Both the position numbers and the translations under genes were made by a program. A DNA stretch of 64,000 bases, from IMG/VR virus record IMGVR_UViG_3300049001_000044, positions 62,001 through 126,000 of that record; one strand, given 5' to 3'. Below are positions 1,159 to 63,600 of the stretch, piece after piece. The first letter of the stretch is position 1. Each line of letters begins with the position of its first letter. The notes under the pieces were generated by a model that saw nothing but the letters and a program-made list of their open reading frames with translations, was not told the origin of the DNA and did not search any database.

Positions 1159-1437
1159 CTACTTTTGTGCGCCAACGTATTTGTCGTAGAGTAGATCGAA
1201 CCCTTTCAATCTACCTCGTGGCACGTTCAGCGCCAACTCAAACTGGCTAACAGCACGAGAGCCGTTCCCCGCCATCCTCTTCAATGTCCTACTGTAGCGA
1301 AGGAGCAAGTCACCGCTAGAAATCTTCAGCTCGCCAGCAATGCGAACAATCTCCCGCCTCGCTCTCGCTGCTTCTAGTCCAGGCGTCTCTATCTTCTCAA
1401 CCAAATCCATCTCTTTGAGGTACTCTTTCAGTCTCAT
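1159..1437 (-). CDS. hypothetical, putative head-packaged protein (MRLKEYLKE leader)
   Basis: ORF; N-terminal motif resembles T4 capsid-targeting sequences. Confidence 0.6.
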   Translation of the reverse strand: MRLKEYLKEMDLVEKIETPGLEAARARREIVRIAGELKISSGDLLLRYSRTLKRMAGNGSRAVSQFELALNVPRGRLKGFDLLYDKYVGAQK

Positions 1438-2237
1438 GATACCACCGCCGGAATTGTCTTGTACCCTGCTTGATCGAGGAGGAAGATGCGGTGGTGACCG
1501 TCCTGTAGATGGTAGGAGTCGTCGGGTAGCTTGATCACTTTCGCAGGATGCTTCTTCATGAAGGCTAGCAGGTTAGCTTGAGCCGACTTATCTCTCTTGA
1601 ACTCATCGACGAGGGTGCGCATATCCGCTTTAGGATCCACGCCCATCTTGCAGACGTTGATAAGAACGCCGGCGACTTGCGTGCTAGATACTCCCTGTGT
1701 TCCAATGGCGCCATTCTTTCTCTTGACGTTAGCGATTGGGAAGTCAACGATACCGGCGTCCTCATCCAACTTTGGCTTGCGGAATTTGTTCAGTACTTGA
1801 CCCGCCGCAGCGTGAGACTTACTAAAATCGCGTGTAGCCTTCTTCGCCCCTTGATGCGTTACCGTGAAGACTGCTTTGCTGTCAAGCATGACGTTGATTT
1901 GGACTTGTCTGAACTTGCAGTCGATAATGTCTTGGTTGTCGTGGATTAGTCCAACGTACTTACCGTTCTCAGCGCGTGAGAAGGTGACTGCGATATTCCT
2001 ATCGACACTGCGAAGAACCGCAGGCTCACGTTCGTCCTCATCAAATCCATCGCCAAGCAGTGACTCAAAGATGATGTGCGCTGCATCTCCCGCAACAAAG
2101 TATTGGAAGCGAGGACCAAGTGAGACGTACTTTGGCTCGCCCATGTAAGCCATTTCCTTGTTGCTCTCAATCCACCCTAGAATGTATTCCTTAATGTCGT
2201 CGTTGATCGACTCACCTAGATAGTCTTTGAATCTCAT
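1434..2237 (-). CDS. putative head-packaged protein with C-terminal ParB/Srx-like domain
   Basis: MRFKDYLGE leader; YHLQDGHHRIF motif of ParB/sulfiredoxin fold. Confidence 0.65.
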   Translation of the reverse strand: MRFKDYLGESINDDIKEYILGWIESNKEMAYMGEPKYVSLGPRFQYFVAGDAAHIIFESLLGDGFDEDEREPAVLRSVDRNIAVTFSRAENGKYVGLIHDNQDIIDCKFRQVQINVMLDSKAVFTVTHQGAKKATRDFSKSHAAAGQVLNKFRKPKLDEDAGIVDFPIANVKRKNGAIGTQGVSSTQVAGVLINVCKMGVDPKADMRTLVDEFKRDKSAQANLLAFMKKHPAKVIKLPDDSYHLQDGHHRIFLLDQAGYKTIPAVVS

Positions 2238-3346
2238 ACCTTCTTCCTTAGTTTTGCGATGAGTTGTTCCATCTCTTTGGCAGGGTCAACCTTACCAGTT
2301 GCTTTGTTGATTGCTGACTTCGTTGCGTTCTTGGAGTCGACGTAGGTCTTAGCATTTTGGTTCACCTTACCGAGGTAGGAATCTAAGTTGCTCTCCAATC
2401 TTTGCATCATGAAGTAGGCACGAATACCATCTGCTAACTCAGCCTCTTTCTTTAATTCTTCAGGGGACATCTTAGACAACCTCAGCAGATATCTCCACAT
2501 CATCAGCTGCTCACCTTCTGCCTGTGATCTAGTCATGCCGCTATACTTGCGATAACCATCAACGAACAATGCCCATTGATACCCGTCATCGCCCTCGTGG
2601 CTCATAGATCTGATTTTTACTCGGTCTATGATGCTCTTTCCGAACTCCTTGTAGAGGGCTTCCTTGCGCTCCTTCTGCCGTTCGTAATTGAGCTTGTTGC
2701 GTGCCTTCTTTTCTTCGGGGTCATTCTTAATGCGGTCACGTTCTACCCGCATCTCATCGTAATACACATGTTCTTCCTTTGCCTCATCAAGCCATTTCTT
2801 CAGCACTTCAATTGGCGCAACAATTGTTGCCGCATTTGATTTAAAAGTGTAGATGTTCTTGATTAGGTGGCCTAACTGATTGTACGCCTTATACTTCTTG
2901 GCAATGGCGGTGCTCACTACCGAATAGACAAGCTTCAGTGCTGGCCCAGTCTTTGTTGCAACATGAATCTTTACCTTACCATCACCGAGGTCTGTGAGTT
3001 GGACATCATCGTACGTGAGCTCAACAGGCTGTTCCCAACCACTCCAATCTGCCGTTGCTTTCTTCGTCTTGAAATGGTTGCCGTGAATGCGCCAGACATC
3101 CATAGGCCAATCCAAATCCATGTCCTTCATGTATTCAACCGCCTCTTGTGGAGTGGTGAACTTCAACTTGCTAGGGTGCGCAGCTTTCAGCTCATTGAAC
3201 TTCGCCTTAGCCTTCTTTTCGGCGGCCTTGACGGCTTCCTTGCTCGGGGCCTTGTCGATATTGGTCAGGTCGAATGAGTGTCCAAAGAAAATCTGTGCCT
3301 TGAATGTTGGCTTTGCGGCTGCTTCAAAGAGCTGAATTAGTTTCAT
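2234..3346 (-). CDS. hypothetical, putative head-packaged protein (MKLIQLFE)
   Basis: Start re-called at ATG after GGAGA RBS. Confidence 0.65.
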   Translation of the reverse strand: MKLIQLFEAAAKPTFKAQIFFGHSFDLTNIDKAPSKEAVKAAEKKAKAKFNELKAAHPSKLKFTTPQEAVEYMKDMDLDWPMDVWRIHGNHFKTKKATADWSGWEQPVELTYDDVQLTDLGDGKVKIHVATKTGPALKLVYSVVSTAIAKKYKAYNQLGHLIKNIYTFKSNAATIVAPIEVLKKWLDEAKEEHVYYDEMRVERDRIKNDPEEKKARNKLNYERQKERKEALYKEFGKSIIDRVKIRSMSHEGDDGYQWALFVDGYRKYSGMTRSQAEGEQLMMWRYLLRLSKMSPEELKKEAELADGIRAYFMMQRLESNLDSYLGKVNQNAKTYVDSKNATKSAINKATGKVDPAKEMEQLIAKLRKKV

Positions 3347-3347
3347 C

Positions 3348-3860
3348 TTATCTCCAAGGGTTGGACTCTGGCTTGATGTTGCCATCCTTGTCGACGCGAT
3401 AGAACGGGCTGTTGTCATCTACGTGGCCTTGCTTGGCGTCATGGACGTGGTCGCCTGCGGTATCATCCCACATGTCTGCGAGATAATCGTAGAAGCCCTT
3501 AGTGCCCTTGTTGAACTTTCTAATGATGCGGTCGATAGCGTCCATGTCGATCTCATACTTGCGCTGGATACGTTCCAACTTGAAGGATGGATCACTACCG
3601 TCAAGTGCTTGAGCTGCAATCATGGAGAGCTCGGTATCGATCTGATACTCCAGCTGTCTCTTAGCTTCTTGGGCCTTAGCACGCTTGTCTTTGCGCTCTT
3701 CGTCAGACATTTTCTGGCGCTTCTTGACAGGTTCATCGTGCGATGCAGCCCATTCTGCGGCGCCCGGGCTAGACATCGACTTGAACCGCTTATATGAACC
3801 GCTCTTGTTTTTGATTTGCACCGAACTCGGTTTGGCCTCGAACAGCTCTGTAACTTTCAT
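3348..3860 (-). CDS. hypothetical, putative head-packaged protein (MKVTELFE)
   Basis: Late-type TAAATA at 3892-3897 upstream. Confidence 0.65.
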   Translation of the reverse strand: MKVTELFEAKPSSVQIKNKSGSYKRFKSMSSPGAAEWAASHDEPVKKRQKMSDEERKDKRAKAQEAKRQLEYQIDTELSMIAAQALDGSDPSFKLERIQRKYEIDMDAIDRIIRKFNKGTKGFYDYLADMWDDTAGDHVHDAKQGHVDDNSPFYRVDKDGNIKPESNPWR

Positions 3861-3950
3861 GGAGAATCTCCAAGTATGGTTATAAAGAAGGTATTTATGT
3901 CCGGGTCCCGAGCATAAGAAAGCCCGCGAGGGTATCACGGGCCAGGATAC

Positions 3951-4460: not shown

Positions 4461-4549
4461 CTCGCTCCCTAATTGTTATAAAAGCGCATCACCTCGATGC
4501 AGTTAAATTATAACACAGGTTGTTAAGAGTGCACAAAAATTTTCAAATT

Positions 4550-7760: not shown

Positions 7761-8012
7761 TTAATTCTCGGCATTTTTAATCCTTTCTTTCAACATTGCG
7801 TCAGCGCAACGATAGGCCCAGTGAGCAAAGTCACCAGGAGAATTGCAACCAGTGACTGGATTGCCCGTTACTCCTGCAAGAGCCTGGCCAGCGAATTGAT
7901 CGCGAAGCTCAAGCGGATGCAGGGGCGTCTTCATTATCTTCAACGCCTCTGCCATGGTCAACCCGTAGCGGTCTCGTACCAAGGCGATTACATCATGGAT
8001 TGTTGGAGTCAT
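7761..8012 (-). CDS. hypothetical phage protein
   Basis: LRDQFAGQAL...AYRCADAML motif common in phage hypotheticals. Confidence 0.6.
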   Translation of the reverse strand: MTPTIHDVIALVRDRYGLTMAEALKIMKTPLHPLELRDQFAGQALAGVTGNPVTGCNSPGDFAHWAYRCADAMLKERIKNAEN

Positions 8013-9064
8013 TTTGCAAGTTGGTTAGGGGTGAATTGGCGTCCAGCGCGCCAATGTTTGGTGGTTTGAACGTGACCCTTGCGAACGAACTTGGCGACAG
8101 ATTTTCGGAACTCGCCGTACTTGAAACCTTCAGCGAGCCTTACCACGTAGCCTTCGTCCTTCGTGAAGTCCATCTTCAAATCCACATGAAGCGTCTCAAT
8201 GTACTTCGAGATGAAGATACCTTCCCACAGCACAGGCACAGGGGTGATATCCAGCAACTTGAACCACAGCAGTGTTTCATCCCATGGCAGGCATTCGTTG
8301 CGTTCATTCCAGATGCTGAAGCCGAGGAAGTAGCTGCTCAGCCCGTCGTAATGGATGGAATGTTCAGCCCACAGATTTTCACCACATACGCGCCAACCCG
8401 CTGGCAAGTTGAAGCAAACGTTCTCGATGAGGAACTTCTTCACCCATGCTCTGTCTTCGCCACCACGTGAATCAATCGAACGGGCATGGACGTGACCATC
8501 ACTGTAGCAGGTGGTGTTCTCGCCATCCATTTTCCTGGTGATGACAACATACTTGCCTTCAAACTGCGAGCAGTCCTTCAACGCCTTGTCATCATCATGG
8601 ATACCTGGCGACCAAGGAAGGTGGAAAGTGCGTTCGTACTTCACGTAGGGAGTGAAGAGCTCAAGCACATTCGCTAACACCTTCTGCACGGACTCGTCAT
8701 GGAACAACTCGCCCATCCCTCTACGCCCATCTTCAAGAATTGGGTTGCCCCACTTGTCGTAGACGTGGTCAGGGTAGAAGTGCGGAGGCACTATCTTCCT
8801 AGTGATGCCTGCTTTCTCCCTCACCTCTTCGACCGAGTAGATTGTCTTCTCGCACATGAGGTGGTGTTCCTCGCAGACGGTTGCACCATTTTCCAGGTAG
8901 TAGCCACCATCAGGCCAGAGCCTGCGCTCTAGGATGTGATGAGCATCCAATTTCCCTTCGGGCGTTTCTTCTGCCTTCTTCCCGCAGAACACGCATCGAT
9001 GATTGTCACGGGCAAATGTTCCCTCTCGGAAAGCATCCCGTGTTAGTAAGATTGGTTCCTTCAT
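8009..9064 (-). CDS. HNH-fused RNA ligase
   Basis: N-terminal CVFC..DAHHI..VCEEHH; ligase motifs KMDGEN, GEN, EGYVVR, KFVR. Confidence 0.85.
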   Translation of the reverse strand: MKEPILLTRDAFREGTFARDNHRCVFCGKKAEETPEGKLDAHHILERRLWPDGGYYLENGATVCEEHHLMCEKTIYSVEEVREKAGITRKIVPPHFYPDHVYDKWGNPILEDGRRGMGELFHDESVQKVLANVLELFTPYVKYERTFHLPWSPGIHDDDKALKDCSQFEGKYVVITRKMDGENTTCYSDGHVHARSIDSRGGEDRAWVKKFLIENVCFNLPAGWRVCGENLWAEHSIHYDGLSSYFLGFSIWNERNECLPWDETLLWFKLLDITPVPVLWEGIFISKYIETLHVDLKMDFTKDEGYVVRLAEGFKYGEFRKSVAKFVRKGHVQTTKHWRAGRQFTPNQLAK

Positions 9065-10029: not shown

Positions 10030-11259
10030 TTAGAGTTCTATCACGTCCTCAGCTGTGGGGCCGTAGGAGAGGTACTTGACGTTGACTTCAGGGATTCGGT
10101 CAGCGATCACCTTTGACAGTTCATCAGTGAGGATGGTGATGAGCTGCCCTCCCAAGTTCACGTTCAACTTTTCACCAACTTGATCCAGGCAAGTGATCAT
10201 CAGTTGGGGTTTGTTGACATGGATACCAGTGATTTTGCTCAAGCTGTAGGATCGCTGAATATCCCTACTGATCATCAGCGACAAGGTATCCACATCCAAT
10301 GGTGCGTAGCGGAAGTGTCCTTGCCAAGGGCCAGTTACGTTCGTCTTATCTGTGGGGATTTGTGTAGACGTGATAGGGAGATTCTCCATCTTCAGAGGGC
10401 CGGCGCCGTGACGCGTGAGGTAGCACCTAGTGATGTAGACTGGGGTGATCTCGTTGTAGAACGTCTCGTACGCAGTCAAGATGCTTGATGGCAGTCCCGT
10501 GACCGAGCGAGTGACGTGAGGGAAGATTCCCAGCTGTTCATCCAACATCAAACCTTGTGCGCCTTCAATGATGAGGTCAGTGTAGGGGCGGGTGTAGTCA
10601 GCGCGAATGCTCTTCAACGGGGAGAGCATCGTTGCGTCGTGTTCGAAGTCAGGATTTTCGAACATCTGCAGGAACGGCGCAGCCTCTTCCTCGTCGACCC
10701 TGTCCTTCAACAGCTCGTATTCTTTCTTCCAGTACTCATTGAAGATATGTTGCAAGGTGCGGGACATCTGGTAGATGGAGGTCTGCTTCACCATGCCAAG
10801 CGTGATGCTGCGGCCGGCGAGGCTGCGAGTGACCGTCTCGTTGATGCCTAACCCGCAAGAACCGTGGCGCCCTTTACCACGGGACAACTCGCGAAGAGAG
10901 TTCAATGCCATGTCGTAGATGATGGTGACGCGGCATTCGGGGTGAGCAATAATCTTGTCCTCAAGATCCACACCCATCAGATTGAGCTGGTCAATCTCTT
11001 TAGTGAGGGAGTAGGGATTGAGGATGAACTGCCGAGCGAGGTAGGTGTTGGCACCAGCAAAGGTACCTGCACCAATATGACCGAAGACATGGCGTTTACC
11101 ATCCTTCGTTTCGACGGTGTGTCCTGCTTGAGCACCACCGTTTTGGCGTGCTACGAGGGAAGGTTTTCCTGCCTTACGAACGAGATAGTCCGTAGTCAGT
11201 CCCTTACCCTCATCGCCGAAGTTTGCACCAATTACTGCAAAAGCGTGATTCATCGACAT
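10030..11259 (-). CDS. purA: adenylosuccinate synthetase-like protein
   Basis: GANFGDEGKG, GGAQAGHT, EGAQG, YLTRHGAGP motifs. Confidence 0.85.
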   Translation of the reverse strand: MSMNHAFAVIGANFGDEGKGLTTDYLVRKAGKPSLVARQNGGAQAGHTVETKDGKRHVFGHIGAGTFAGANTYLARQFILNPYSLTKEIDQLNLMGVDLEDKIIAHPECRVTIIYDMALNSLRELSRGKGRHGSCGLGINETVTRSLAGRSITLGMVKQTSIYQMSRTLQHIFNEYWKKEYELLKDRVDEEEAAPFLQMFENPDFEHDATMLSPLKSIRADYTRPYTDLIIEGAQGLMLDEQLGIFPHVTRSVTGLPSSILTAYETFYNEITPVYITRCYLTRHGAGPLKMENLPITSTQIPTDKTNVTGPWQGHFRYAPLDVDTLSLMISRDIQRSYSLSKITGIHVNKPQLMITCLDQVGEKLNVNLGGQLITILTDELSKVIADRIPEVNVKYLSYGPTAEDVIEL

Positions 11260-11292: not shown

Positions 11293-11922
11293 TTAACCCA
11301 AATCAGTTTGCTCTGCGTGGTACTTCTGTGGATTCTTGTCGTCTCGCCATACCTTGACGTGGATAGGATCGTGGAGCTCGACATTGTCTTTGTCATCTTC
11401 TCCTCTCCAATCTTCGTTCTTCAGCGTGATGTTGAAGATTGCCCAGGCAACTTCCCTTCCGCTCTTCTTCCAGCGGCCGCGAAGATCAAGTGCGTCGACT
11501 CCCTTGTCGTCAATCCATGCATCTGCGATCTCACCCATGTGGATGTGATTTTCATCGCAGACTTTCTTCAGGGCTCCATCGCTCAGCCTGATCTCGTCTT
11601 CGAAGGAATCTTCGAAGCGTTGTGCTTTGCTCGCCCGGTCAGCCTTGTCAGTTTCCGCCTTGACCGTTTCAGGGTCGCGCAGCTCCTGTGCCTTCCAACC
11701 TGGCTTGAGATCGTCTTTGCTTGGTTGATGTTCGAAGCGTTGGGAAGTACCGTCAGGGTAGAAGGCGAAATAGACCTTGTGCTTTCCCTTGCCGTTGACG
11801 CCCAGCTTACCCACCAAGTCTCCCTTGATGATCTCGCCATACACCTGGCCACCTACTCGCTCAAGACGAGCAATCAGGTCTTCAATCGTGGTTTTATTTT
11901 CTAGCAGCTCATGGACTTTCAT
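11293..11922 (-). CDS. hypothetical, putative head-packaged protein (MKVHELLE)
   Basis: Leader motif; TAAATA upstream at 11959-11964. Confidence 0.6.
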   Translation of the reverse strand: MKVHELLENKTTIEDLIARLERVGGQVYGEIIKGDLVGKLGVNGKGKHKVYFAFYPDGTSQRFEHQPSKDDLKPGWKAQELRDPETVKAETDKADRASKAQRFEDSFEDEIRLSDGALKKVCDENHIHMGEIADAWIDDKGVDALDLRGRWKKSGREVAWAIFNITLKNEDWRGEDDKDNVELHDPIHVKVWRDDKNPQKYHAEQTDLG

Positions 11923-12048
11923 TTTATGTGATCCTCAAATTGAGTGTAAGTGATCTCATATTTATTTTAACACAATCAAAATCAACATGCACAAAAGGCA
12001 CAGGACTTTTACATCCTGTGCCCCTCTGTCTCCTCTACTTCTAGAGAA

Positions 12049-23721: not shown

Positions 23722-23798
23722 AAGAAGTATGGTTAGTTGGCCTACAAGTGTATCTATCCCAAATAAATATCCTGACCCCTAACAACATGGACGATACC

Positions 23799-24347
23799 AT
23801 GAACATCAAATTCAAGAAATACCTAGAGTTCGTTAACCTTGACGACCCTTCTGATGAGCAAATCAACGAACTGTTCGGCATCTTCAAGAACAATCAGAAG
23901 ATCGACAAGGTGAAAGCTGCTCGTGAAAAGCTGAAAGCGGACACTGCAAAGAAGGTGAATGATTGGCGCGCACAGAAAGCTGCCCAACAGCAAGGTGACG
24001 ACGACGAAGATACAGACATCCCGCAAGCGAAGAATGATCAACGTCGTCCTAACATGACTGCTCAAGCAGCACCGAAGGCAGCCGCTGCTGGTCGCGCAGC
24101 AGAAAGAGACTGGGTGAGCAACCTTGCTGAGGAACACCGCATAAAGACGGTCAAGGGCGAAGAAATGATCGCCATGGCAAAAGATAAGTACCCATTTGGG
24201 CCTGGCTTCAGTGATGAAGATCTGAAAGATGCGGTGACCATGGAAATTTGGGGCTCGTCGTTTGATGACCACGGTGAATGGACCGAATTCAAGCTTAAAG
24301 ATGCCAGTGGCAAACTTATCAAGAGAAAGCGCGTTGACGGGTATTAA
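23799..24347 (+). CDS. putative head-packaged protein (MNIKFKKYLE...INE)
   Basis: TAAATA at 23764-23769; Leu/Ile-X-Glu sites. Confidence 0.6.
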   Translation: MNIKFKKYLEFVNLDDPSDEQINELFGIFKNNQKIDKVKAAREKLKADTAKKVNDWRAQKAAQQQGDDDEDTDIPQAKNDQRRPNMTAQAAPKAAAAGRAAERDWVSNLAEEHRIKTVKGEEMIAMAKDKYPFGPGFSDEDLKDAVTMEIWGSSFDDHGEWTEFKLKDASGKLIKRKRVDGY

Positions 24348-31806: not shown

Positions 31807-32421
31807 TTACTGGATTTCTTCGACCTCGAAATCGCGGAAGCCGCCGCCATCATCCGCGTACTGACCCCAGATGCAGTTGCCGATCATACTGTCGCAGACG
31901 TAGTGGAGCAGTGCGCTCTTGTCATCTGCGACCGCAGGACCGGTATCACCATGGTCAACAGGGCCGTCAGTGGTAATGATCGCGGTGATTGTGTACGGCA
32001 TGTTCGAGCCATGGCCATGATCCATTGCATCAGCATAGGTCTCGATGCTGATTTCATCTTCCTCATCTTCCTCATCTTCATCGTCACCATATCCACCACC
32101 GCTGATATCTGCTTCGGATTCCACATTGTTCATAAACTCATGGATTCCGAATTCGACGGATTCAATTTCAATGTCCAACACCTTGACGCCCATGCCCTCC
32201 TTTTCGAGGTCCTCGACGTAGTGCGGGTTCTTGAGCAGACTCATTACCTCGTCTTGCAGGTCCTTGCATTGGCTTCCCTTGAATTCGATGTCGTGGTCAG
32301 TACCATCAGGGATATCGAAGTAGTGGGGCGTGTTGTAGGCATTTGCATTCAGCTCAAAAGTAATCTTGTACTTGTGAGGCTTTGCCTGGTTCATGTTATT
32401 CAGTTCTTGCAAGAGTTTCAT
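31807..32421 (-). CDS. acidic protein, putative head-packaged (MKLLQELN)
   Basis: GGAG RBS; DEEDEEDE tract. Confidence 0.65.
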   Translation of the reverse strand: MKLLQELNNMNQAKPHKYKITFELNANAYNTPHYFDIPDGTDHDIEFKGSQCKDLQDEVMSLLKNPHYVEDLEKEGMGVKVLDIEIESVEFGIHEFMNNVESEADISGGGYGDDEDEEDEEDEISIETYADAMDHGHGSNMPYTITAIITTDGPVDHGDTGPAVADDKSALLHYVCDSMIGNCIWGQYADDGGGFRDFEVEEIQ

Positions 32422-39041: not shown

Positions 39042-39493
39042 GCGGTCATTCCGTAAATGAGGGATGCATTCTCACGGATCGCTGCGAAGTTCAGTATTTC
39101 CAGGATCGCGGTGAGATGCTTCCGGTCGGCCACACGTTCAGGGTAGGCCTTCATGATGAACTCGTACGCGCTGCTCGGGCCAGTGCAGGAGTTCTGGCAT
39201 TCGCCGGCCACGATGTGGATGATGTCGGCGATTGTGAGCGGGGTGTTCCAGCTTTCGATCAGCTTCAGGAGCTTGTCCTTGTCCTCGGGGAAGAAGTAGC
39301 CGATGTCAGGTTCGTGGGCTTCCATGTCGTCTTCCATGTCGCTAACCGCCTGGCATTCCTGGGCAGTGGCAGCATAGAGTTGAATGCCCTTCTTGCCCAG
39401 CGCTTCGATCATGGCCGTGACGTCTTCCTCCTCGAGGCGAATCACTGCATTGCGGCGGGTATCAGTGGGATGAACCAAAGTAAATTGCCTCAT
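39038..39493 (-). CDS. hypothetical protein
   Basis: Start re-called at MRQFTL. Confidence 0.6.
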   Translation of the reverse strand: MRQFTLVHPTDTRRNAVIRLEEEDVTAMIEALGKKGIQLYAATAQECQAVSDMEDDMEAHEPDIGYFFPEDKDKLLKLIESWNTPLTIADIIHIVAGECQNSCTGPSSAYEFIMKAYPERVADRKHLTAILEILNFAAIRENASLIYGMTA

Positions 39494-39762
39494 GGCATGT
39501 CCTTTGCGAGGGTTACACGGAAGTGGCCAGGATTGACCAGGTAGCTCATCTTGAACGTCCCATTCTTGTTGCCCAGGGGCTTGCGAATGTGGCGATACGA
39601 GTACTTCGCGATTGCCGCACGAACGGCCTGAAACTCGGCGGAGTCCTTGTAGGGGATATCCACGAAGGAACCCGCTGTCTTTTTCGCGGCCAGCTCCTTG
39701 AGGTGGTTCTCGACCATGGTCTCGAGCTCTGACTTGGTCTCCATCAATTCTTGAACTTTCAA
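39490..39762 (-). CDS. hypothetical, putative head-packaged protein (MKVQELME)
   Basis: TTG start after AAGGAG. Confidence 0.6.
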   Translation of the reverse strand: MKVQELMETKSELETMVENHLKELAAKKTAGSFVDIPYKDSAEFQAVRAAIAKYSYRHIRKPLGNKNGTFKMSYLVNPGHFRVTLAKDMP

Positions 39763-39773
39763 TGTCGCGCTCC

Positions 39774-40052
39774 TTACGGCAGTTTGGAGAAGTCCAACCC
39801 TGCTTCGTCGAGGGTGTGGTTCTTGAAGTCGCGGATGTAGTTCGAGAAGTCCATCTCGTAGCGGAAGGACACCTCGTCGCCCACACTCAGCAGGCGTAGC
39901 TTCGCGAGCTCTACCTTGCTCTGTCCCAGCGTTTGACCTTCGTACACAGTCTTCTGCCCTTCGACAACCATCGTCAGGGTAATCATGCCGCCGCGTTCTT
40001 CCATCATGCGTACGCGCTGCACCTTACCACGATTCACCAAATGTGCCATCAT
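39774..40052 (-). CDS. hypothetical protein
   Basis: GAGGAG RBS. Confidence 0.6.
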   Translation of the reverse strand: MMAHLVNRGKVQRVRMMEERGGMITLTMVVEGQKTVYEGQTLGQSKVELAKLRLLSVGDEVSFRYEMDFSNYIRDFKNHTLDEAGLDFSKLP

Positions 40053-40096
40053 CGTTCTCCTCAAAAAGTGGGAGGGTTGGTTCCCTCCCGTTCATC

Positions 40097-41491
40097 TTAT
40101 ACAGCGATCATGTTGCGGCCCTTGAACTCCAGGACTGCGTCATCAGCCATTTCCACGACCTTGTCGAAGCGGATACCGCCACTTGCATCCTTGCGGTTGA
40201 GGGTGGGGAAGCGGAGGGATGCGTGCTTCTTCGCCTTCGTCTTCGACACTTCCTGGAACTTGATCACGGCCGTGGCACCCAGGTATTTCTTGGGGTTAGC
40301 CAGCATGTCTGCCCGCATGTCATCGTTCAGACCCGAGCCGACACAGGTTTCGAAGTAGATGCCATCGTCAGTCCAGCCCGCCACCACGATGCCGCCGACG
40401 GTATTCGCGAGGCGGGATTTGGGGCGACCGTAGTAGAAGCCAATGATGCGAGCGTCCGCCGGGTAGAAGCGCTTGACCTTGATCCAGGTGAAGGTGCGAT
40501 CCCACTCATAAGTGCTGTTCAGGTTCTTCAGGATCAGGCCCTCGATCTTCCTCGCCTTGTTCTCCGGCATGTCGATGGCTTCGTCGCAGTACTCCAGCAT
40601 GTCCGCCTCGTCTTGAACGATGCGTCCTTCCGTGAGGATGATCTTCTTCAGGCCCAGGGCTGGCAGGAGTTCAGCCAGGTACGCACGATTCTGTTCCATC
40701 GTGATGCCGCATTTCTGTGCCATCCAGTCCGTGAGCGGCATGAGGAAGAATGCGCGGAGCCGGAGGGATGCCTTGGCCTCGGTGTTGCCCGCTTTCTTCG
40801 CGTTCACTGTGGCCTCAAAGCCCAGGTCAGAGATGCGTTCGCAGTCCAACACGTAGTCGAATCCCAAGTGGTTGCGAATCTTGTAGAGCTCTTCGTCGAA
40901 GAGGCCGAGGATGTGGGAGGATTGTTTGCCCGACCGGGAGAAGGGGAGGATTTCGTCCTTCTTGACCATGATGATCGTGCGCTCGCCGTCGTACTTGAAG
41001 TCGGCTTGGCAGGGGAAGGTGATGTAGTCCCCGAATTCCATGTCCTCACCCATCTTCTCGGCCAGCATGACCTCGAAGGAAGGGATCACCCCGTACTTGT
41101 CCTTCAGCACCTTGTTCACAGTGTCGGCGGAGAAGCCCGCTTTCAGGTCCTTGTCCAGGATTCGTGCGAGGTAGCGTTGGGTTTCGTGGTCGAAGTAGGA
41201 GAGGGAGTCTGACACCGCCTCTCGTGCGTCATTGCCCGTGAGCTCCTTTGCATCCAGCTTGTCGAGGAGCTGGAAGAACCGGTCGTAATCCTTCTGGGAT
41301 GCGGGGACCTTCGCATCGTCTCCCGGCATATCGAATTTGCGAACGCCGAAAACGCGGAAGGGATTCTGAGCTTCCCAGATCAGCCGCCAGGTATTCTTGT
41401 CGGCTTGTTGCAGGGCAGCCACAATGGCTTTCTTAGTCCCAGCACCGCCAGCAGATTCCGCGGCTTTGATGACTTGTACGAAGTTACTCAT
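40097..41491 (-). CDS. ATP-dependent DNA ligase (T4 gp30-like)
   Basis: KYDGER, EGLILK, WIKVK, VGSG, SLRFP. Confidence 0.92.
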   Translation of the reverse strand: MSNFVQVIKAAESAGGAGTKKAIVAALQQADKNTWRLIWEAQNPFRVFGVRKFDMPGDDAKVPASQKDYDRFFQLLDKLDAKELTGNDAREAVSDSLSYFDHETQRYLARILDKDLKAGFSADTVNKVLKDKYGVIPSFEVMLAEKMGEDMEFGDYITFPCQADFKYDGERTIIMVKKDEILPFSRSGKQSSHILGLFDEELYKIRNHLGFDYVLDCERISDLGFEATVNAKKAGNTEAKASLRLRAFFLMPLTDWMAQKCGITMEQNRAYLAELLPALGLKKIILTEGRIVQDEADMLEYCDEAIDMPENKARKIEGLILKNLNSTYEWDRTFTWIKVKRFYPADARIIGFYYGRPKSRLANTVGGIVVAGWTDDGIYFETCVGSGLNDDMRADMLANPKKYLGATAVIKFQEVSKTKAKKHASLRFPTLNRKDASGGIRFDKVVEMADDAVLEFKGRNMIAV

Positions 41492-42269: not shown

Positions 42270-42860
42270 CTAGGCTCCCTTTACTTGATCGATTGCCCAC
42301 TTTCGTTCTGTGCAGTGGAAGCAAACTCCGCATGGTGGAATGCTATCATGCTTGGGACATGAACGAGTTAAATCGAGCAAATCATTTACACCAAGCAATG
42401 AGTACAGATAGATCGTCGCGCGCTTATCGAATGTCACGAACGGTGTTGCGTACCCTCTGTACTTGTTATCCATTGCAGTCAATGGACGCATTGGCTTAGG
42501 TCCAGTGTAATCCCAGTTGATTGGATTTTGAGTCACGCCAGTGTAGAGCCAATCGACTTGCTCCATGGTTTCGTAGATGTCTCTACGAAGCAATCCATTC
42601 TCAAGAACGAACTCATGCACCCTAGATCGCAAATCCACGTTGAATTTGTTTTCAAGATAGATGAGTGTGTTATCAATCGAGGCATTCTTCAAGTCTTTTC
42701 GGTACACGACAAAAATTTTGTCAGGCACGACCCCATTTACAAGTAGGCAGTACAGAAGAATTACACTGTCTGCCCCGCCCGAATACGAGATGCCGGTCAT
42801 CCCATCATGCAGCGGGATGATCACGTTTCGATAGGGGGTCTTGTAAATGATTTCCTTCAT
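42270..42860 (-). CDS. QueC-like PP-loop ATPase
   Basis: SYSGGADS; TRSC..CGVCFHCTERKWA. Confidence 0.75.
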   Translation of the reverse strand: MKEIIYKTPYRNVIIPLHDGMTGISYSGGADSVILLYCLLVNGVVPDKIFVVYRKDLKNASIDNTLIYLENKFNVDLRSRVHEFVLENGLLRRDIYETMEQVDWLYTGVTQNPINWDYTGPKPMRPLTAMDNKYRGYATPFVTFDKRATIYLYSLLGVNDLLDLTRSCPKHDSIPPCGVCFHCTERKWAIDQVKGA

Positions 42861-44434
42861 TACGACTTGATACCTTTACCTTGGACTGATTCTTGATCAA
42901 CCTCTTCTAGGAAGGTGAACGAGCTTGATGCGCTCAACTCATCTAGCATTGGTTTGATATCAGACGATACAGCATCTGGTGTCACCAAGAAGAAATAAAT
43001 CTTGGGTGAGACGAATGTAATGCCTGGACAGTGTAGAGTCACGGTGAACCACATCTGCTTAACATTCTCGCCTGGGGCTAGTTGTGTCCCTGGAGTGATT
43101 CGGATACCAACCACGCCGTCATCAGACACTACCGAGTTTTGCAAGATAGTAGCCATCTCAGCATCACCAAATTGCAGCGAGAAGACCAGGTCTTCTTTTT
43201 CAATCTGGGATAGCACGTTAACTGGCATCAGCATTTTCACGTCGACCTTCATATCAGCAGTGCCGCCGAGGGTGTTCGTACCCAGATACTGGATGTTGTT
43301 ATCTGGAAGCGAGTTAGTGTCTGGGCGATGCAGAAGACGATTTTCTGTTTGACTCACCTTATCATTCAAAATCAGCGCATTGTAGGTCGAATCGGCGATC
43401 ATGACGTCCTTCACCTCTTGCGCCATTGGGGCGATCTTGTTGATGCCGAACAGTGCCGATGCAACGCCACTTGCCAACGCGGCCGAGAAAGAAGAACCGG
43501 TGTTAAGCGTGTACTCATCTACCGCATTGAAGCCCGCAACGTCAACGTCTTTAGCTGGCGCATACAGATCAATTTTCTTGTTCACACCATAAACCTCAGC
43601 GAATTCATGATCGTCACTAGTGCTACCTGCAACGGTGAAAACACCCGCCAGACCAGCAGGAGTAACCTCGTCGATGTTTGTGAGAGTGTTACCAGCAGCC
43701 GCAACAACCATCATGCCTGCATCGATGAGTTTGGTAATTTTCGCGTTGATGTACTCGCTCGCTGGGATACGCCACGACATATTCACGACCATTGGCACAT
43801 CGAGTTTCGTCTGACGGTATTCGTAGACTTGGTCGATCAAATCACCCAGTTCACTGATGGATGGTTTGCGAGTAGCATCGCTGACCTTTACGATCTTGAG
43901 TGTTGCGTTCTTGTTGACACCGAGCGTTTTACCAGCTACGAGAGATGCAATTGCAGTGCCGTGACCCAACGTATCTTCGGTGTCAGTGAAATCGGGGAGG
44001 GTGAAGAGGTCTTCGATTTGCACGCCCTCGAACTCGACGTGGTCCTTTCTGATTCCGCTATCCATCACAATAACTTCTACCGATCGCTGCGCTTCAACAG
44101 TCGCAAGATATGGGTTGGCGACAAATGGGGCGTAGCGATTTGCGATTCGATTCTGCGCCCACCCCAGCATTTTGATTGGTGCTTCAGCAGGTTCTAGGAT
44201 TTCGCCTGCTTGAATACGACTGACGGGATCGGCAACTATTTCAGTGGTCCAGCCATCGTCGGTCTTTACATGAAACAGAATAGGCTCGCCAACAGCCACG
44301 CAGGACACAAGTCCTTCGGCTTTCAGAGCCATGTTAATCAAGCCGATCGGAATGTTTGACAGATCGGTCTCGTCAGTCTTGAGCAAGAACAGGTTAGCTT
44401 GCTCAGTAGTTGCGAAGGTTAGTTGAAGTTTCAT
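42860..44434 (-). CDS. S8 subtilisin-like serine protease
   Basis: DSGI, HGT, AAAGN, GSSFSA catalytic triad motifs. Confidence 0.9.
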   Translation of the reverse strand: MKLQLTFATTEQANLFLLKTDETDLSNIPIGLINMALKAEGLVSCVAVGEPILFHVKTDDGWTTEIVADPVSRIQAGEILEPAEAPIKMLGWAQNRIANRYAPFVANPYLATVEAQRSVEVIVMDSGIRKDHVEFEGVQIEDLFTLPDFTDTEDTLGHGTAIASLVAGKTLGVNKNATLKIVKVSDATRKPSISELGDLIDQVYEYRQTKLDVPMVVNMSWRIPASEYINAKITKLIDAGMMVVAAAGNTLTNIDEVTPAGLAGVFTVAGSTSDDHEFAEVYGVNKKIDLYAPAKDVDVAGFNAVDEYTLNTGSSFSAALASGVASALFGINKIAPMAQEVKDVMIADSTYNALILNDKVSQTENRLLHRPDTNSLPDNNIQYLGTNTLGGTADMKVDVKMLMPVNVLSQIEKEDLVFSLQFGDAEMATILQNSVVSDDGVVGIRITPGTQLAPGENVKQMWFTVTLHCPGITFVSPKIYFFLVTPDAVSSDIKPMLDELSASSSFTFLEEVDQESVQGKGIKS

Positions 44435-47264: not shown

Positions 47265-47418
47265 CGTTTCCTTCAGTTTGTTTCGTCGATAAGGCTATAA
47301 TACCATGGTGCGTCAGGATGTAAAACAAAAGATTGTAACAAATTGTAACGATGAATCCTAAACCTGGCGCTATATATAGCAGACCTTGGTAAATACGCGA
47401 TCTAATATGGAGGCCACC

Positions 47419-47886
47419 TTGGCGAAGAAAAGAATCCCAGAACTTAAGATCGAGACTATTAACGGTCGAGACAACTACATCTACCTTTCCCTAGTAGAGT
47501 ACAAGCGAGAGAATTACCTATGCATCATCGACAACATTAAGTCCGCAGAAATTGGTGCGTACGTCTTGGACTATGCTGGCCAGAGCGGTATTGACGTTGT
47601 GGAATTTTTGGAGTTGGCTACCCTATGGTTCTACTCCAAGTCCGACGAGTACCCACTGTCCGTGGCCTTGGCACAACAAGGCAAGACCGAATGGGCATCA
47701 GGTATGTACCGAACTTTTGACACCACCTACGTCTCACGAATCGTTGGGCAGGGGTTCTCGTACGACAGAATGGAAAAATCGAAGGTGCGTAGACGTAGAG
47801 TGGTTGCTCTACCGGCGGGCATCGAAGTACGATTGAAGAAGGATGGACGGAAACTAGAGCCAGGACAACTTATCCCGGAGGAATGA
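47419..47886 (+). CDS. hypothetical late protein
   Basis: GTAAATA at 47389-47395; GGAGG RBS then TTG. Confidence 0.65.
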   Translation: MAKKRIPELKIETINGRDNYIYLSLVEYKRENYLCIIDNIKSAEIGAYVLDYAGQSGIDVVEFLELATLWFYSKSDEYPLSVALAQQGKTEWASGMYRTFDTTYVSRIVGQGFSYDRMEKSKVRRRRVVALPAGIEVRLKKDGRKLEPGQLIPEE

Positions 47887-48383
47887 TGAAGCTAAGTCAG
47901 CTGTTTGAAGCAAAGGCGGTGCCAGAGATTTGCAGAGGAATCAACGCAACTGTTACGGTGAACTTAGAACAGGCAGATAGGATTCTTAATGGCGAAATGG
48001 ATGGGAAGGAAATCGTATCATTCCTAGAGGACGCAGGAATTTGGTGGTACGACATGGAGAAGGATGGTGCCTCTATGATAGAGGAGGCGAAGGAATTCGC
48101 CATGAAGGAAGATGACCTCACCCAAGGATTTGGCAAGTACTGCTATGACTTGCTGAAGAAGGGCGAATCCAAGACAGAGGAAGTAGAACTGCCCATCGTC
48201 CTCGTGGCAAAGAAGCCAAAGGGATGGGACTATGAGAAAAACCCGCTACAGCAGGGCGGGCTGAATGGTAATTCCTACATCGAAACCAGTCGTTGGAAGT
48301 CCGTGCAGCTCTTACGGGTTCTCTACTTCAGCAACAAGGGCTGGGTAGAGAAACCAGTAAGCGCCAAAATCAAACTTGAGTGA
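47883..48383 (+). CDS. putative head-packaged protein (MKLSQLFE)
   Basis: Leader motif; late operon. Confidence 0.6.
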   Translation: MMKLSQLFEAKAVPEICRGINATVTVNLEQADRILNGEMDGKEIVSFLEDAGIWWYDMEKDGASMIEEAKEFAMKEDDLTQGFGKYCYDLLKKGESKTEEVELPIVLVAKKPKGWDYEKNPLQQGGLNGNSYIETSRWKSVQLLRVLYFSNKGWVEKPVSAKIKLE

Positions 48384-56334: not shown

Positions 56335-56783
56335 TCTAGTCGTCCAATAGTTAGGTGGAAGAAGCGCTTGTTGGTGGGGAGGCCATACGATGAGCGGATA
56401 TCCGCCAACTCATCGCATCGAACGTTCAACCACCAATGGTCCGCGTTGGAGTAGATTTGGTGGGTGTAATCAATCTTGACTTTCCTACCATCATCCCATC
56501 CCCATCGTTCAGGGTTAGGGAGTGTCTCGCCTCGTATAACGGAGACGTGAGCACCCCACTTACTCCGCCAATGGAGAGGGATGTCGAAGCGCTTTTGGAT
56601 CTGCGCTGCGTAGTAACGAGCGATCTCGTCATCTACCTGGAGTAGGAGCCAGTCACCTACGTAGCGAAGGGTGCCAACAACACTGTGCACGTAATCGTCA
56701 CCCTCGCGATCGCGATACGTCGTGACGAGTCTTCCAAAGCTACTTCCTAAGATGAGGGTCCCGTCAGACGTATCTACAATCAT
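56331..56783 (-). CDS. 2H phosphoesterase
   Basis: HVSV and HLTI motifs. Confidence 0.75.
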   Translation of the reverse strand: MIVDTSDGTLILGSSFGRLVTTYRDREGDDYVHSVVGTLRYVGDWLLLQVDDEIARYYAAQIQKRFDIPLHWRSKWGAHVSVIRGETLPNPERWGWDDGRKVKIDYTHQIYSNADHWWLNVRCDELADIRSSYGLPTNKRFFHLTIGRLE

Positions 56784-57316
56784 GTCGAGATGACCTCCGA
56801 ATCGGTGCCTACGGAAGGCGAGAAGGTTCCTGCTGCGATGATCGCGTTCTTGACGATCGTTTCGGCAGCCTCGTAGGTGCGAGGAGTACCATTCAGCAGA
56901 TTAGTGAAGACGCTACCCATTGCGTACTCAGCACCGCTACCAACTGCAGCGAAGCCACGAGTCGAGCGAAGGACGGAGAAGTCCGCTTGTAGTTCCCACA
57001 GTTGACCCTTCACACCGATCAGTGCATTGCCGCCCTTGTCGTGGTCGAAGCTCTTCAGCGCGTCCTTGATGTCAGGGATCAGCACAGTGATTAGCCAACG
57101 ATAGATCTGTTTTGGATCTTCAGGAACGACTGGATCCGGTAGCCCATGCTCCAGCACTTGGCCAAAGCGATAGCTTGAGGTAAAGCCGAAGATGACGCCG
57201 TTCTTGTCAAACACCTTGGGTTGAGTGTGAACGACTTTGTTGTTCCAGCCAGTTCCTTGGATGTCGCCACCCATCAGAACCTTGCCATTGTGTTCGATGC
57301 CTACGATGCAGGTCAT
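56780..57316 (-). CDS. proteasome/HslV-like Ntn hydrolase
   Basis: N-terminal Thr (MTCIVG), K33-like PKVF, AVGSGAEYAMG. Confidence 0.8.
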   Translation of the reverse strand: MTCIVGIEHNGKVLMGGDIQGTGWNNKVVHTQPKVFDKNGVIFGFTSSYRFGQVLEHGLPDPVVPEDPKQIYRWLITVLIPDIKDALKSFDHDKGGNALIGVKGQLWELQADFSVLRSTRGFAAVGSGAEYAMGSVFTNLLNGTPRTYEAAETIVKNAIIAAGTFSPSVGTDSEVIST

Positions 57317-57769: not shown

Positions 57770-58345
57770 TCATAGGACTCCTGTTGAGATGAGATGCAGT
57801 TGTAAGACGATCACCAATGCGTAGGCAATCGCGTGGCTCTTTTTGAAGCTGTACCCTTGCTCGTCCTTCGCATACAGAGTGCGACGGCATACGTCACGTT
57901 GGGCGTTGTAGAGCTTGAGGAATTGCTTCTTACCCGGTCGAATCAGTGCGAGGACGTCTGCAAGTTCTTCCACACTTCGTGGCTTCACAAAGTTGAGGAC
58001 GTCACCATGATTCGACAACTGAAACAGTTTCTTCTGTTCAGTTGGAACCAGAAGTAGCCCCCAGTCGGGTTCGATCTTCAACAGCTCTTCAATCTCTTCA
58101 CGAGAAGAGAAGTGATCGTACACACCCAAGTGCAGCATGTCCACTTTGAAGTAGCCCAGCTTTTCAGCTGCCTCGTAAGGGATGGCTGCGAGCTGTGTGA
58201 CAGGGTCGACAGGGATTTTCTGAGGATAGACACCGCATGGGTGAGGAGCTAGGTAACCGTTCTTCACTAAGCTGGCACGAGGCCAAGGAAAGACAGAGTT
58301 GGGTTTGAAGCTCGTCGGGAAGTCGATGTCAATATCCGCGTTCAT
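57770..58345 (-). CDS. miniature DNA polymerase III alpha (DnaE) catalytic-core protein
   Basis: DIDIDF, HPCGVY, KVDML, ALIRPG, YSFKKSHAIAYA. Confidence 0.8.
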   Translation of the reverse strand: MNADIDIDFPTSFKPNSVFPWPRASLVKNGYLAPHPCGVYPQKIPVDPVTQLAAIPYEAAEKLGYFKVDMLHLGVYDHFSSREEIEELLKIEPDWGLLLVPTEQKKLFQLSNHGDVLNFVKPRSVEELADVLALIRPGKKQFLKLYNAQRDVCRRTLYAKDEQGYSFKKSHAIAYALVIVLQLHLISTGVL

Positions 58346-58527
58346 TGGAGTACAGAATCTTTCTTGATGCAGTAGAAGCGGTCTTCAGCGTTGATGAATA
58401 CTCCGCCTTTGGCTTTGCACTGTTCACGGTAGTCAACCTTCTCGTTGACGTACAAGACGCCGACCACCACGATAATTGGCAGGGCGATGAAGGGAAGAGA
58501 CAGCATGATGCGGTCTAGTATGCTCAT
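58342..58527 (-). CDS. small membrane protein
   Basis: Single TM. Confidence 0.6.
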   Translation of the reverse strand: MSILDRIMLSLPFIALPIIVVVGVLYVNEKVDYREQCKAKGGVFINAEDRFYCIKKDSVLQ

Positions 58528-62709: not shown

Positions 62710-62780
62710 TTTGATCCTTTAAGTGACAGCGATACCTACCGTACTATTGTAGTACGGAGGCAATCAACTTTAAACTTCAG

Positions 62781-63188
62781 TCAGTCTTTGCAGTCTTCGC
62801 TGATGCGAGTAGGAGGGGTAGTGCCGAAGAACTCAGGATGCTTCGCGTAGTGCGCAGCTCGTTCTTGGTGGTCTTGCTCGAGGTAGGCCTGCAGCGCATT
62901 CACAACGTGCTGCGTCTCGTGAGGGGACATGTGGTAGAAGAGAGTGTCGAGAAGCTTCTTCGCCATCTCCTTTGCATCCTCGCATGTCGCACTGATGCCT
63001 TGTTCAGCAAGTTGTTCAGTGCGCCATAGCCCGGCAAAGGAGTGGGTGATTGACTCATGCGAAGCATGCTCCACGATAAGATGAAAGCGCTCATTCTCTG
63101 TCCGATAGATGAGGTACTCTTCCTTGCCACGCCATGTGGGATTACCGTTCTCTTCGGCAAACTTTTCTAACGGTTGAAGGTCTGTCAT
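62781..63188 (-). CDS. hypothetical protein
   Basis: ORF. Confidence 0.55.
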   Translation of the reverse strand: MTDLQPLEKFAEENGNPTWRGKEEYLIYRTENERFHLIVEHASHESITHSFAGLWRTEQLAEQGISATCEDAKEMAKKLLDTLFYHMSPHETQHVVNALQAYLEQDHQERAAHYAKHPEFFGTTPPTRISEDCKD

Positions 63189-63261
63189 TTCTTCTTCGGT
63201 GGTTTTGGGAACAACGTGCAGAGGATCATCGCCAGCACCATGATCACCATGGGATGGGAGT

Positions 63262-63600
63262 TCATTGATAGGTCTTCAGCCAGCGATTCAGGATTTTCTT
63301 GCACTCTCTAGCTTCTTCGCCCTTCCACGCCTGCATGTTGTTGAGCATGTACATGACTTGAGATTGAACACCTCTGATGCCGAACAGCTCACCATCCTCT
63401 CCTCGACTTTGGAAGGATTTCGTCATTGCATGGGCGTAGGTCAGAGCATAGGTGTTAACGCTTGCATTCAGCATGGCGATTCGAAGGGCGTCGATGACTT
63501 CCTTGGGCACCTTCGCCTTCGCAAGTTGCACGGCAAGTTCGTCGCTCATCATTGGGCCAGGGCCTTTGTTCTTGCCCTCTAGTAGTTCATTCACTTTCAT
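63262..63600 (-). CDS. putative head-packaged protein (MKVNELLE)
   Basis: GGAG RBS then MKVNELLE. Confidence 0.6.
   Translation of the reverse strand: MKVNELLEGKNKGPGPMMSDELAVQLAKAKVPKEVIDALRIAMLNASVNTYALTYAHAMTKSFQSRGEDGELFGIRGVQSQVMYMLNNMQAWKGEEARECKKILNRWLKTYQ

Follow-up and report, generated by a model that had tools for sequence, protein, structure and literature searches.

Why should a series of phage genes with seemingly unrelated products begin with almost the same eight or nine amino acids? The question is raised by a 64,000-nucleotide stretch of DNA (bases 62001-126000 of IMG/VR record IMGVR_UViG_3300049001_000044, hereafter the window), in which an initial annotation had singled out ten N-termini carrying a leader comparable to the capsid targeting sequence (CTS) of phage T4. 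The complete record, labelled G000, is 343,229 bp long, carries direct terminal repeats and has a GC content of about 50%. It belongs to an uncultivated T4-like jumbo phage with a gp23-like capsid protein. Our analysis indicates that the leaders probably belong to a T4-type system of propeptides for capsid targeting and protease cleavage, greatly expanded and built on two interchangeable tag classes.

Two leader classes across the genome

All ten N-termini could be read where they had been placed. On the minus strand these are, by start position, 1437 (MRLKEYLKE), 2237 (MRFKDYLGE), 3346 (MKLIQLFE), 3860 (MKVTELFE), 11922 (MKVHELLE), 32421 (MKLLQELN), 39762 (KVQELME, with a TTG start) and 63600 (MKVNELLE); on the plus strand, 23799 (MNIKFKKYLE) and 47886 (MKLSQLFE). 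Chance falls far short of explaining their resemblance. Directly after a start codon, the strict core K[VLI]x[EQ][LF][FLMI][EN] occurs 13 times genome-wide, with 83 or more open codons downstream in every case, while composition predicts 0.002 such N-termini among the 476 called genes. At internal positions 0.4 occurrences were expected from composition and 2 were seen. Similarly, the back-translated DNA pattern matched the genome 12 times and the reversed pattern never, and a position-specific scoring matrix set 15-18 genes cleanly apart from the background.

The leaders are therefore real, but the picture of one leader on some ten genes had to be enlarged to two classes and a variant, on about 38 genes (about 8% of the total, counting both classes) dispersed across the entire 343-kb genome. 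Class 1, M-K-[LVI]-x-[EQD]-L-[FLM]-E-[ASGN], comprises 18 genes, six of them in the window (3346, 3860, 11922, 39762, 47886 and 63600), with L6 and E8 invariant in 18/18. The second, equally large class emerged because the odd cases in the window (1437, 2237 and 23799) were followed up: class 2, M-R-F-K-x-[YF]-[LI]-x-E, is found on 20 genes, these three included, the majority lying at 162-183 kb, and its [LI]-x-E occupies residues 7-9. A variant start, MKLL[QR]EL[QN], is common to three genes, namely window gene 32421, the gene starting at G000 220671, which adjoins the capsid gene, and that at G000 162329. The L/I-x-E motif is present in class-1, class-2 and variant leaders alike. The leaders span 8-9 residues and are strictly N-terminal, many starts lying 0-7 codons past an in-frame stop.

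At the DNA level the leaders are diverse. Among codon pairs encoding the same leader residue, 56% use different codons; Leu6 is specified by five different codons and Glu8 by both of its codons, and mean nucleotide identity across the leader DNA is 63%. Selection therefore acts on the peptide and not on the DNA, and a cause at the level of mRNA was rejected on the same codon diversity. A Sec or Tat signal peptide was also rejected, since the leaders are only 8-9 residues long, acidic and amphipathic, have no hydrophobic core and are followed by polar, Pro-rich linkers. In AlphaFold2 models the leader forms a short helix at residues 3-8. In the model of a class-2 paralogue, residues 9-32 have a predicted local distance difference test (pLDDT) score below 50 and are followed by a globular domain; in that of an ADP-ribosyltransferase-like protein, the first ten residues average a pLDDT of 53.

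The protein bodies behind the leaders had been described as mutually unrelated. This holds for class 1, where all-against-all BLASTP found no mutual similarity (all E > 0.02), but not for class 2, whose bodies fall into nine families, one with nine paralogues. These nine paralogues have bodies about 30% identical, yet all of them keep M1, R2, F3, K4 and E9. Six paralogues of class 2, of about 277-301 residues, stand in tandem at G000 177.4-182.6 kb.

Three families could be traced into metagenomes: that of a 189-residue ADP-ribosyltransferase-like protein and those of the 209- and 370-residue window proteins. In all three the leader persists in homologues down to 34-50% identity, and an indel-rich linker follows immediately. 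Homologues of the 170-residue window protein (31% identity) carry either class-1 MKITELLEG or class-2-like MRLSEYLKE on one body family. Because homologous bodies can carry either class, the two leader classes are interchangeable modules. A pair of IMG/VR loci, L219:3001-3552 and L221:3001-3474, displays the exchange directly, with homologous bodies (..WPVTNMMGHVKNFRKIDGWWEHPTEV.. and ..WTVHNMSGYPKKFRKIDGFWEHPTEV.., respectively) behind a class-1 and a class-2-like leader.

Head genes, late promoters and the parallel with T4

The genome encodes T4-type proteins of head assembly. A prohead protease of the gp21 family lies at G000 224554-225168 on the minus strand (Peptidase_S77, PF03420, E = 6.9e-24; phrog_207, E = 4e-56) and the gp23 capsid protein at 220823-222040, also on the minus strand (PF07068, E = 1e-92); together with a putative scaffold gene they form one cluster. 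Directly downstream of the capsid gene are the variant-leader gene and two class-1 leader genes. The capsid protein itself begins MELFEN, with further LLEG and VLEN sites behind, and the class-1 tag may mimic this N-terminus, which would be the capsid protein's own scaffold-binding segment. A complex prediction for the protease with residues 1-30 of the 3348-3860 protein, run without controls, gave a score of 0.00 and a partner pLDDT of about 30, a result that counts neither for nor against such a pairing.

Upstream of 64 called genes, among them those heading the protease and scaffold-capsid operons, the hexamer TAAATA (consensus nATAAATA) has its peak at a distance of 30-40 nt. When we walked up the operons, 31 of the 38 leader genes (82%) led to such an element as compared to 108 of 442 other genes (24%; Fisher p = 3e-12). 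The earlier remark that several leader genes follow TAAATA was confirmed, the elements having been located upstream. A gp55-like late sigma factor is also encoded in G000 (E = 1.5e-8). We infer from these sequence features that the leader genes would be expressed late, together with the head genes. GC-rich hairpins with a T run stand directly upstream of TAAATA at window positions 11965-12000 and 3898-3935, and at G000 290075-290110 and 220702-220740. Such compact arrangements of terminator, promoter and leader gene look like insertable late-gene modules.

The correspondence with T4 is close at several points. In T4 (NC_000866), internal proteins (IP) II and III start with MKTYQEFIAE, gp24 with MAKINELLRE and Alt with MELITE, and gp23 contains ..FLTEAEIGG. 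Class 2, MRFKxYLxE, resembles the T4 IP tag MKTYQEFIAE, particularly in the forms MKTFKQFLSE (in Ralstonia phage RsoM2USA) and MITFKQFIAE (in one IMG/VR relative), while class 1, as in MKVNELLE, resembles the gp24 propeptide. In both systems the tag is short (6-10 residues in T4, 8-9 in G000), strictly N-terminal, common to otherwise unrelated, hypervariable proteins, and ends with L/I-x-E, the gp21 cleavage motif. T4 gp23 is cut at ..FLTE/A, and the T4 late promoter is TATAAATA; the G000 promoters, nTAAATA, are T4-like. The S77 (gp21-family) protease occurs in one genome with a capsid protein of gp23 type and a late sigma factor of gp55 type, and the cargo includes one predicted ADP-ribosyltransferase, as T4 has Alt. 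The gp21 protease strips N-terminal propeptides, including that of gp23, and these propeptides are capsid targeting sequences (PMC5694885, PMC3012670). The T4 CTS goes back to Mullaney and Black (1996), as reviewed in PMC3012670 and PMC5694885, and one short T4 propeptide serves as targeting tag and cleavage site at once (PMC5694885).

There are also clear differences. About 38 genes are tagged in G000 and a handful in T4; they are spread over 343 kb in many small late units, whereas T4 has one or two IP loci, and two co-existing, interchangeable tag classes are used at large scale. The G000 cargo includes enzymes of 170-620 residues and the nine-member family, whereas T4 IPII (100 residues) and IPIII (193 residues) are small. 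Finally, packaging and cleavage are experimentally proven in T4, whereas the G000 system is known from its sequence. T4 also offers an unexpected class-2-like start: at 114210 of NC_000866 (plus strand, locus L211), a 76-codon open reading frame (ORF) begins MLLEFKQFLYE. This ORF is presumably uvsW.1, and we know of no link between it and the head.

Two other phage systems invite comparison. In phiKZ, 201phi2-1 and SPN3US, propeptides of head and ejection proteins are processed by an S80 protease (gp175 or gp245; PMC5694885). Like G000 they belong to jumbo phages, and many of their head proteins are cut after the Glu of a three-residue motif; the propeptides are thought to be CTS-like, and SPN3US gp53 and gp54 are paralogous inner-head proteins with identical N-termini (PMC5694885). 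However, the motif is S/A/G-x-E or A-x-E and not L/I-x-E (P3 = Leu or Ile), the propeptides mostly have at least 100 residues and not 8-9, and the protease is of the S80 and not the S77 type. These phages also form a lineage separate from G000, whose capsid is gp23-like and whose nearest relatives are RsoM2USA and Xanthomonas phage XacN1. We rejected a phiKZ-like S80 system for its disagreement with the S77 protease, the P3 Leu/Ile and the 8-9-residue tags of G000.

The polyvalent proteins of phages and conjugative elements (Iyer et al. 2017, as cited in PMC7824862) and the ejectosome proteins share with the G000 cargo effector-type domains delivered with the DNA, if the G000 cargo is indeed so delivered. 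The cargo includes a protein with ART-PolyVal as its best Pfam match, a weak ParB-like nuclease match and a zeta-like kinase, and the best structural match of one member (208201, see below) is a domain of a cyanophage pre-ejectosome protein. In polyvalent proteins the domains are fused into one giant protein, whereas G000 has one small leader-bearing gene per domain. In full-text searches, CTSs came up in connection with T4, with SPN3US and other phiKZ-like phages, and with P1; a comparative review of jumbo phages makes no mention of such tags.

How far does the leader extend beyond G000? By capsid protein, the closest cultured phage is RsoM2USA (64% identity), followed by Stenotrophomonas phages CM1 and RAS14 (57% across 93% of the query), XacN1 (54%) and, at about 44%, CBB, GAP32 and similar jumbo phages (Rak2-like according to the XacN1 authors). 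Uncultivated relatives in IMG/VR are many, with capsid proteins 55-96% identical, the majority 65-81%, and include the complete genomes G001 (358 kb) and G002 (368 kb). Megablast with 6 kb of the window found no match in cultured phages. G001 and G002 each have about 10-12 leader genes; RsoM2USA has about 12-14 of class 2 and few of class 1, and XacN1 almost none. The surroundings of the capsid gene in 80 IMG/VR relatives, 1.06 Mb of sequence, held 27 class-1 and 37 class-2 starts (64 in all), compared with 1 and 3 (4 in all) for control motifs in reversed order. The capsid protein begins MELFENW in G001 and G002 and MNLFENW in RsoM2USA, that is, with a class-1 core lacking the MK.

For RsoM2USA, ten virion proteins have been identified from gel bands, using liquid chromatography coupled to tandem mass spectrometry (PMC8504454). 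Three of the ten have a class-2 leader, M(K/L)TFKQ[FY]: ORF89 starts with MKTFKQFLSE, ORF132 with MKTFKQFLN..LME and ORF438, from an internal Met, with MLTFKQY..ILTE. As the leader occurs on about 15 of the 486 RsoM2USA genes, this is an enrichment among virion proteins (hypergeometric p ~0.0025). The annotated starts of two genes in MG752970, ORF82 (57864-58508) and ORF438 (309479-311161), look too far upstream; an internal Met in ORF82 gives MRLLQELLEAK, comparable to the internal start of ORF438. No homologues of RsoM2USA ORF82-90 were found in G000.

Since the leaders look like the T4 packaging and cleavage tags, they may mark proteins that are packed into the head and possibly injected. 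The mechanism that we infer would run as follows. Late in infection, the gp55-like sigma factor would drive the TAAATA promoters, so that some 38 proteins would be made with an N-terminal tag of 8-9 residues. The tag, a short helix followed by a flexible linker, would bind the core of the assembling prohead and bring the protein into it; the gp21-family protease would then cut after the invariant Glu of L/I-x-E, leaving the mature protein trapped in the head with the DNA and resident in the virion. Part of the cargo (the protein with an ADP-ribosyltransferase fold, the P-loop kinase and the NUDIX protein) would plausibly be delivered with the DNA to the next host, like T4 Alt and IPI*. The original idea of a portable T4-like leader is favoured by the protease and capsid genes, the L/I-x-E motif, the TAAATA units, the conservation of the leader while bodies and linkers vary, and the three RsoM2USA proteins; what did not hold is that there is a single leader.

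Cargo and competing explanations

The leader proteins range from 81 to 622 residues, with folds that include a predicted H-Y-E ADP-ribosyltransferase, a P-loop kinase and a NUDIX hydrolase. The first is the product of G000 207632-208201 (here 208201), which matched Pfam ART-PolyVal (PF18760) with E = 3e-6 and 28.4 bits, under the cut-off of 31.2; precomputed annotation assigns PF18760 to this protein and to three homologues. Its AlphaFold2 model (pLDDT 84.6) retrieved ADP-ribosyltransferase folds with Foldseek (E = 5e-5 to 1e-3, template-modelling score about 0.4-0.5), the best match being the cyanophage pre-ejectosome protein; behind it ranked MbcT, an entry for an anti-CRISPR protein (6kyf), diphtheria toxin and PARPs. 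In the family alignment, His, Tyr and Glu occupy invariant columns. The modelled protein is thus predicted to have an ADP-ribosyltransferase fold, a parallel to T4 Alt.

The product of G000 162981-163700 is a P-loop, zeta-toxin-like kinase (AAA_33 and Zeta_toxin), whose RsoM2USA orthologue retains the leader, and that of G000 56482-56949 is a NUDIX hydrolase. Weak hints of a transglutaminase-like fold and of a ParB-like nuclease were also obtained. For the nine-paralogue family, Foldseek found no match of the class-2 paralogue model in the PDB, and VIA-align gave weak scores (Z = 3.3-5.6) enriched in ADP-ribosyltransferase folds; for both reasons we call this family possibly ADP-ribosyltransferase-like and no more. 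The profile phrog_12810 (788 positions) spans both the domain of the class-2 paralogues and the kinase. G000 has a separate gene for each; in other phages the two may therefore be fused into a polyvalent-like protein. The claim that the cargo consists of injected anti-defence effectors finds some backing for a few proteins only, namely the one of predicted ADP-ribosyltransferase fold, the kinase, the NUDIX hydrolase and those with weak hints of a nuclease or a transglutaminase.

For 25 leader genes (the class-1 set and the three class-2 genes of the window) we searched the relatives for homologues. Most of them had none in G001, G002, RsoM2USA or XacN1, despite the fact that relatives lacking most of these homologues have capsid proteins 78-81% identical to that of G000; the leader cargo therefore turns over quickly.

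Several observations weigh against a capsid-targeting system with effector cargo. For seven of the 38 leader genes no linkage to TAAATA was seen. The strict class-1 DNA pattern occurs 0 times in RsoM2USA and once in XacN1, inside a long ORF. The RsoM2USA mass spectrometry comprised 10 gel bands without N-terminal information and bears on class 2. The NUDIX cargo has distant orthologues in RsoM2USA and XacN1 that lack the leader, and the fold assignment of the nine-paralogue family is weak, as just described. The mature cargo has a median isoelectric point of 6.3 and is not markedly basic; T4 internal proteins are basic, and the notion of T4-like basic, DNA-binding internal proteins thus found no general support. 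Finally, many class-2 genes sit among genes that look like those for tail sheath, tail tube and neck, as judged from N-terminal sequences only, so class-2 products in such structural-looking clusters may be bulk internal or structural proteins rather than effectors.

This last point leads to the alternative that survives best, although we find it rather unlikely: the leader would be only a protease-recognition propeptide on structural or scaffold-like head proteins (as on T4 gp24, gp67 and gp68), processed or degraded during maturation, and not a targeting tag for effectors. Class 1 is indeed nearest to the propeptide of gp24, the T4 vertex protein; the capsid protein and the putative scaffold bear similar ELFE or ELLxE motifs, and leader genes adjoin the capsid gene in addition to the many class-2 genes in structural-looking clusters. 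However, enzyme folds such as ADP-ribosyltransferase, kinase and NUDIX have no obvious structural role, and the absence of most tested class-1 cargo from close relatives would be atypical for structural proteins. Moreover, short T4 propeptides do both targeting and cleavage (PMC5694885).

Alternatively, the tag could serve some other destination or process, for example timed degradation (as a degron for a protease of host or phage, such as a subtilase), a phage chaperone, or the tail and baseplate. The head localisation of the tagged proteins being deduced, the clustering of class-2 genes with tail- and neck-like genes and the presence of an S8 subtilase gene in the window (42860-44434) would fit such a role. 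We regard it as improbable, because the motif ends in exactly the L/I-x-E cut by T4 gp21-family proteases, the tags resemble T4 head propeptides and lack the hydrophobic core of a signal peptide, and genes that flank the capsid gene across the 80 relatives bear the leader, as do the three RsoM2USA virion proteins.

It is very improbable that the similarity is a feature of the nucleic acid or of translation initiation, such as AAA as the second codon, a 5' coding region that is AT-rich and unstructured, or a hot-spot of recombination. Across the genome, Lys takes the second position more often than any other residue (86 of 476 genes), and AAA stands at codon 2 in 12 of the 18 class-1 leaders, but the codon diversity described above, particularly at Leu6 and Glu8, argues otherwise, as does the retention of the peptide in homologues at 34-50% identity. 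Classes 1 and 2 differ in DNA, yet have the L/I-x-E ending in common, and 63% identity of the leader DNA is too low for driving recombination. Chance, or a single paralogous family with bodies diverged past recognition, is scarcely credible: nine class-2 genes are true paralogues and two tested cargo families have ADP-ribosyltransferase-like cores, one weakly, but chance predicts 0.002 leaders, the leader class is swapped inside one body family, and the single family was rejected on the unrelated class-1 bodies and the clearly different cargo folds.

With the T4-type targeting and cleavage system preferred, we put forward, tentatively and with less confidence, a broader view of its use. In this widespread clade of jumbo phages, most of them uncultivated, the tags would be a plug-and-play address by which whatever gene is acquired becomes an effector packaged in the head and injected into the host, giving each phage a private, fast-changing set of dozens of such proteins, among them ADP-ribosyltransferases, kinases and nucleotide hydrolases; class 2 would then stand on abundant paralogous internal proteins and class 1 on accessory effectors. 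The two classes may dock at different sites of the prohead core or differ there in copy number.

Should the tags function like those of T4, a simple rule on sequence would list the packaged, and possibly injected, proteome of a whole, mostly uncultivated clade of jumbo phages, and supply dozens of candidate host-takeover or anti-defence proteins that have no other annotation. Leader swapping and indel-rich linkers would then show how phages recruit new genes as cargo of the virion. The CTS principle, which has so far been characterised in T4, would extend to phages of 340-390 kb at about 5-10 times the scale, with several times the number of tagged proteins known from T4, and short portable tags would be on offer with which foreign proteins could be loaded into large capsids.

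The leader genes of the window and their surroundings

The leader genes of the window illustrate both the units and the cassettes. Four genes on the minus strand, starting at 3860, 3346, 2237 and 1437, form one unit, and all four bear the leader. The unit is headed by a class-1 gene (3348..3860; 170 residues, MKVTELFE/AKPSS) with a GGAG ribosome-binding site (RBS), and the operon walk reaches a TAAATA late-promoter-like element (ACATAAATACC) at 3892..3897 on the minus strand, which follows a hairpin and lies 37 nt upstream of the 3860 start. The G001 homologue of this protein begins MKVAELLEN. Next comes a class-1 gene for 370 residues (2234..3346, MKLIQLFE/AAAKP), in which both the leader and the strict core were read. 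In its family the leader start is kept in 7 of 8 members, down to 34% identity, followed by an indel region of 0-45 residues; the protein had no Pfam or PHROG match, and an ESM Atlas search gave no usable match. The third gene is of class 2 (1434..2237; 267 residues, MRFKDYLGE/S) and has a weak C-terminal hint of a ParB-like nuclease (Pfam ParBc_2, E = 3.7e-4, 21.1 bits, under the cut-off of 23.6); no relative of its product was found in IMG/VR. The last, also of class 2, encodes 92 residues (1159..1437, MRLKEYLKE/M). Apart from the sub-threshold ParBc_2, Pfam and PHROGs gave no match for the ten window leader proteins.

The class-1 gene at 11293..11922 (minus strand; 209 residues, MKVHELLE/NK) has its own promoter, a TAAATA element at 11959..11964 (minus strand) that follows a terminator-like hairpin and lies 42 nt upstream of the start. 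As an in-frame stop lies only 4 codons upstream of the start, the leader must be N-terminal here. Homologues (47-53% identity) retain MKVQEILNE or MKLSQVLNE, followed by an indel-bearing linker. The gene, a cassette of hairpin plus TAAATA, lies upstream of purA (10030..11259, minus strand; adenylosuccinate synthetase). Insertion between purA and a von Willebrand factor A (vWA) gene had been suggested; purA is where expected, but the vWA assignment of the other neighbour was unsupported by Pfam even at E <= 1.

On the plus strand, a class-2-like gene (23799..24347; 182 residues, MNIKFKKYLE/F), the leader of which was read directly, follows a TAAATA element at 23764..23769 (plus strand) by 35 nt; its homologues begin MKATFKQSY in G001 and MKLSFKQYS in G002. 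Also on the plus strand, a class-1 gene (47886..48383; 165 residues, MKLSQLFE/AKAVP) with a GGAGG RBS is the second gene of a unit headed by a TAAATA element at 47390..47395 (plus strand), 29 nt upstream of the 47419 start.

The weakest member is the variant-leader gene at 31807..32421 (minus strand; 204 residues, MKLLQELNN), with L-Q-E at residues 4-6. No TAAATA occurs in the 110 nt upstream, and by BLASTP its body shows no relation to the one encoded at 220671. A class-1 gene for 112 residues (63262..63600, minus strand; MKVNELLE/GKNKGPGP) has a GGAG RBS, and the operon walk from it reached no TAAATA. The class-1 gene at 39490..39762 (minus strand; 90 residues, (M)KVQELME/TK) combines a TTG start with an AAGGAG RBS. 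It overlaps a 282-residue ORF (39038-39886, minus strand), the N-terminal part of which is off-frame sequence rich in R, T and S; because of this, we consider the 90-residue gene real. The real genes here are probably 39774-40064 (96 residues), 39490-39762, and a gene for about 151 residues from about 39493 (MRQFTL...).

Scattered among the leader genes, all on the minus strand, are auxiliary enzymes: an RNA ligase (8009..9064), the purA product mentioned above, an ATP-dependent DNA ligase (40097..41491) and the S8 subtilase (42860..44434). Three tRNA genes, Lys-CTT, Glu-TTC and His-GTG, stand in tandem at 81-320 on the minus strand. Two further genes on that strand concern the salvage of nicotinamide adenine dinucleotide (NAD): 14217-15731 encodes a nicotinamide phosphoribosyltransferase (NAPRTase and NAMPT_N), and 17206-18339 a cytidylyltransferase-like and NUDIX protein, which we take to be a bifunctional nicotinamide mononucleotide adenylyltransferase/NUDIX enzyme. 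The pair presumably resembles the NAD+-reconstitution pathways that phages use in counter-defence.

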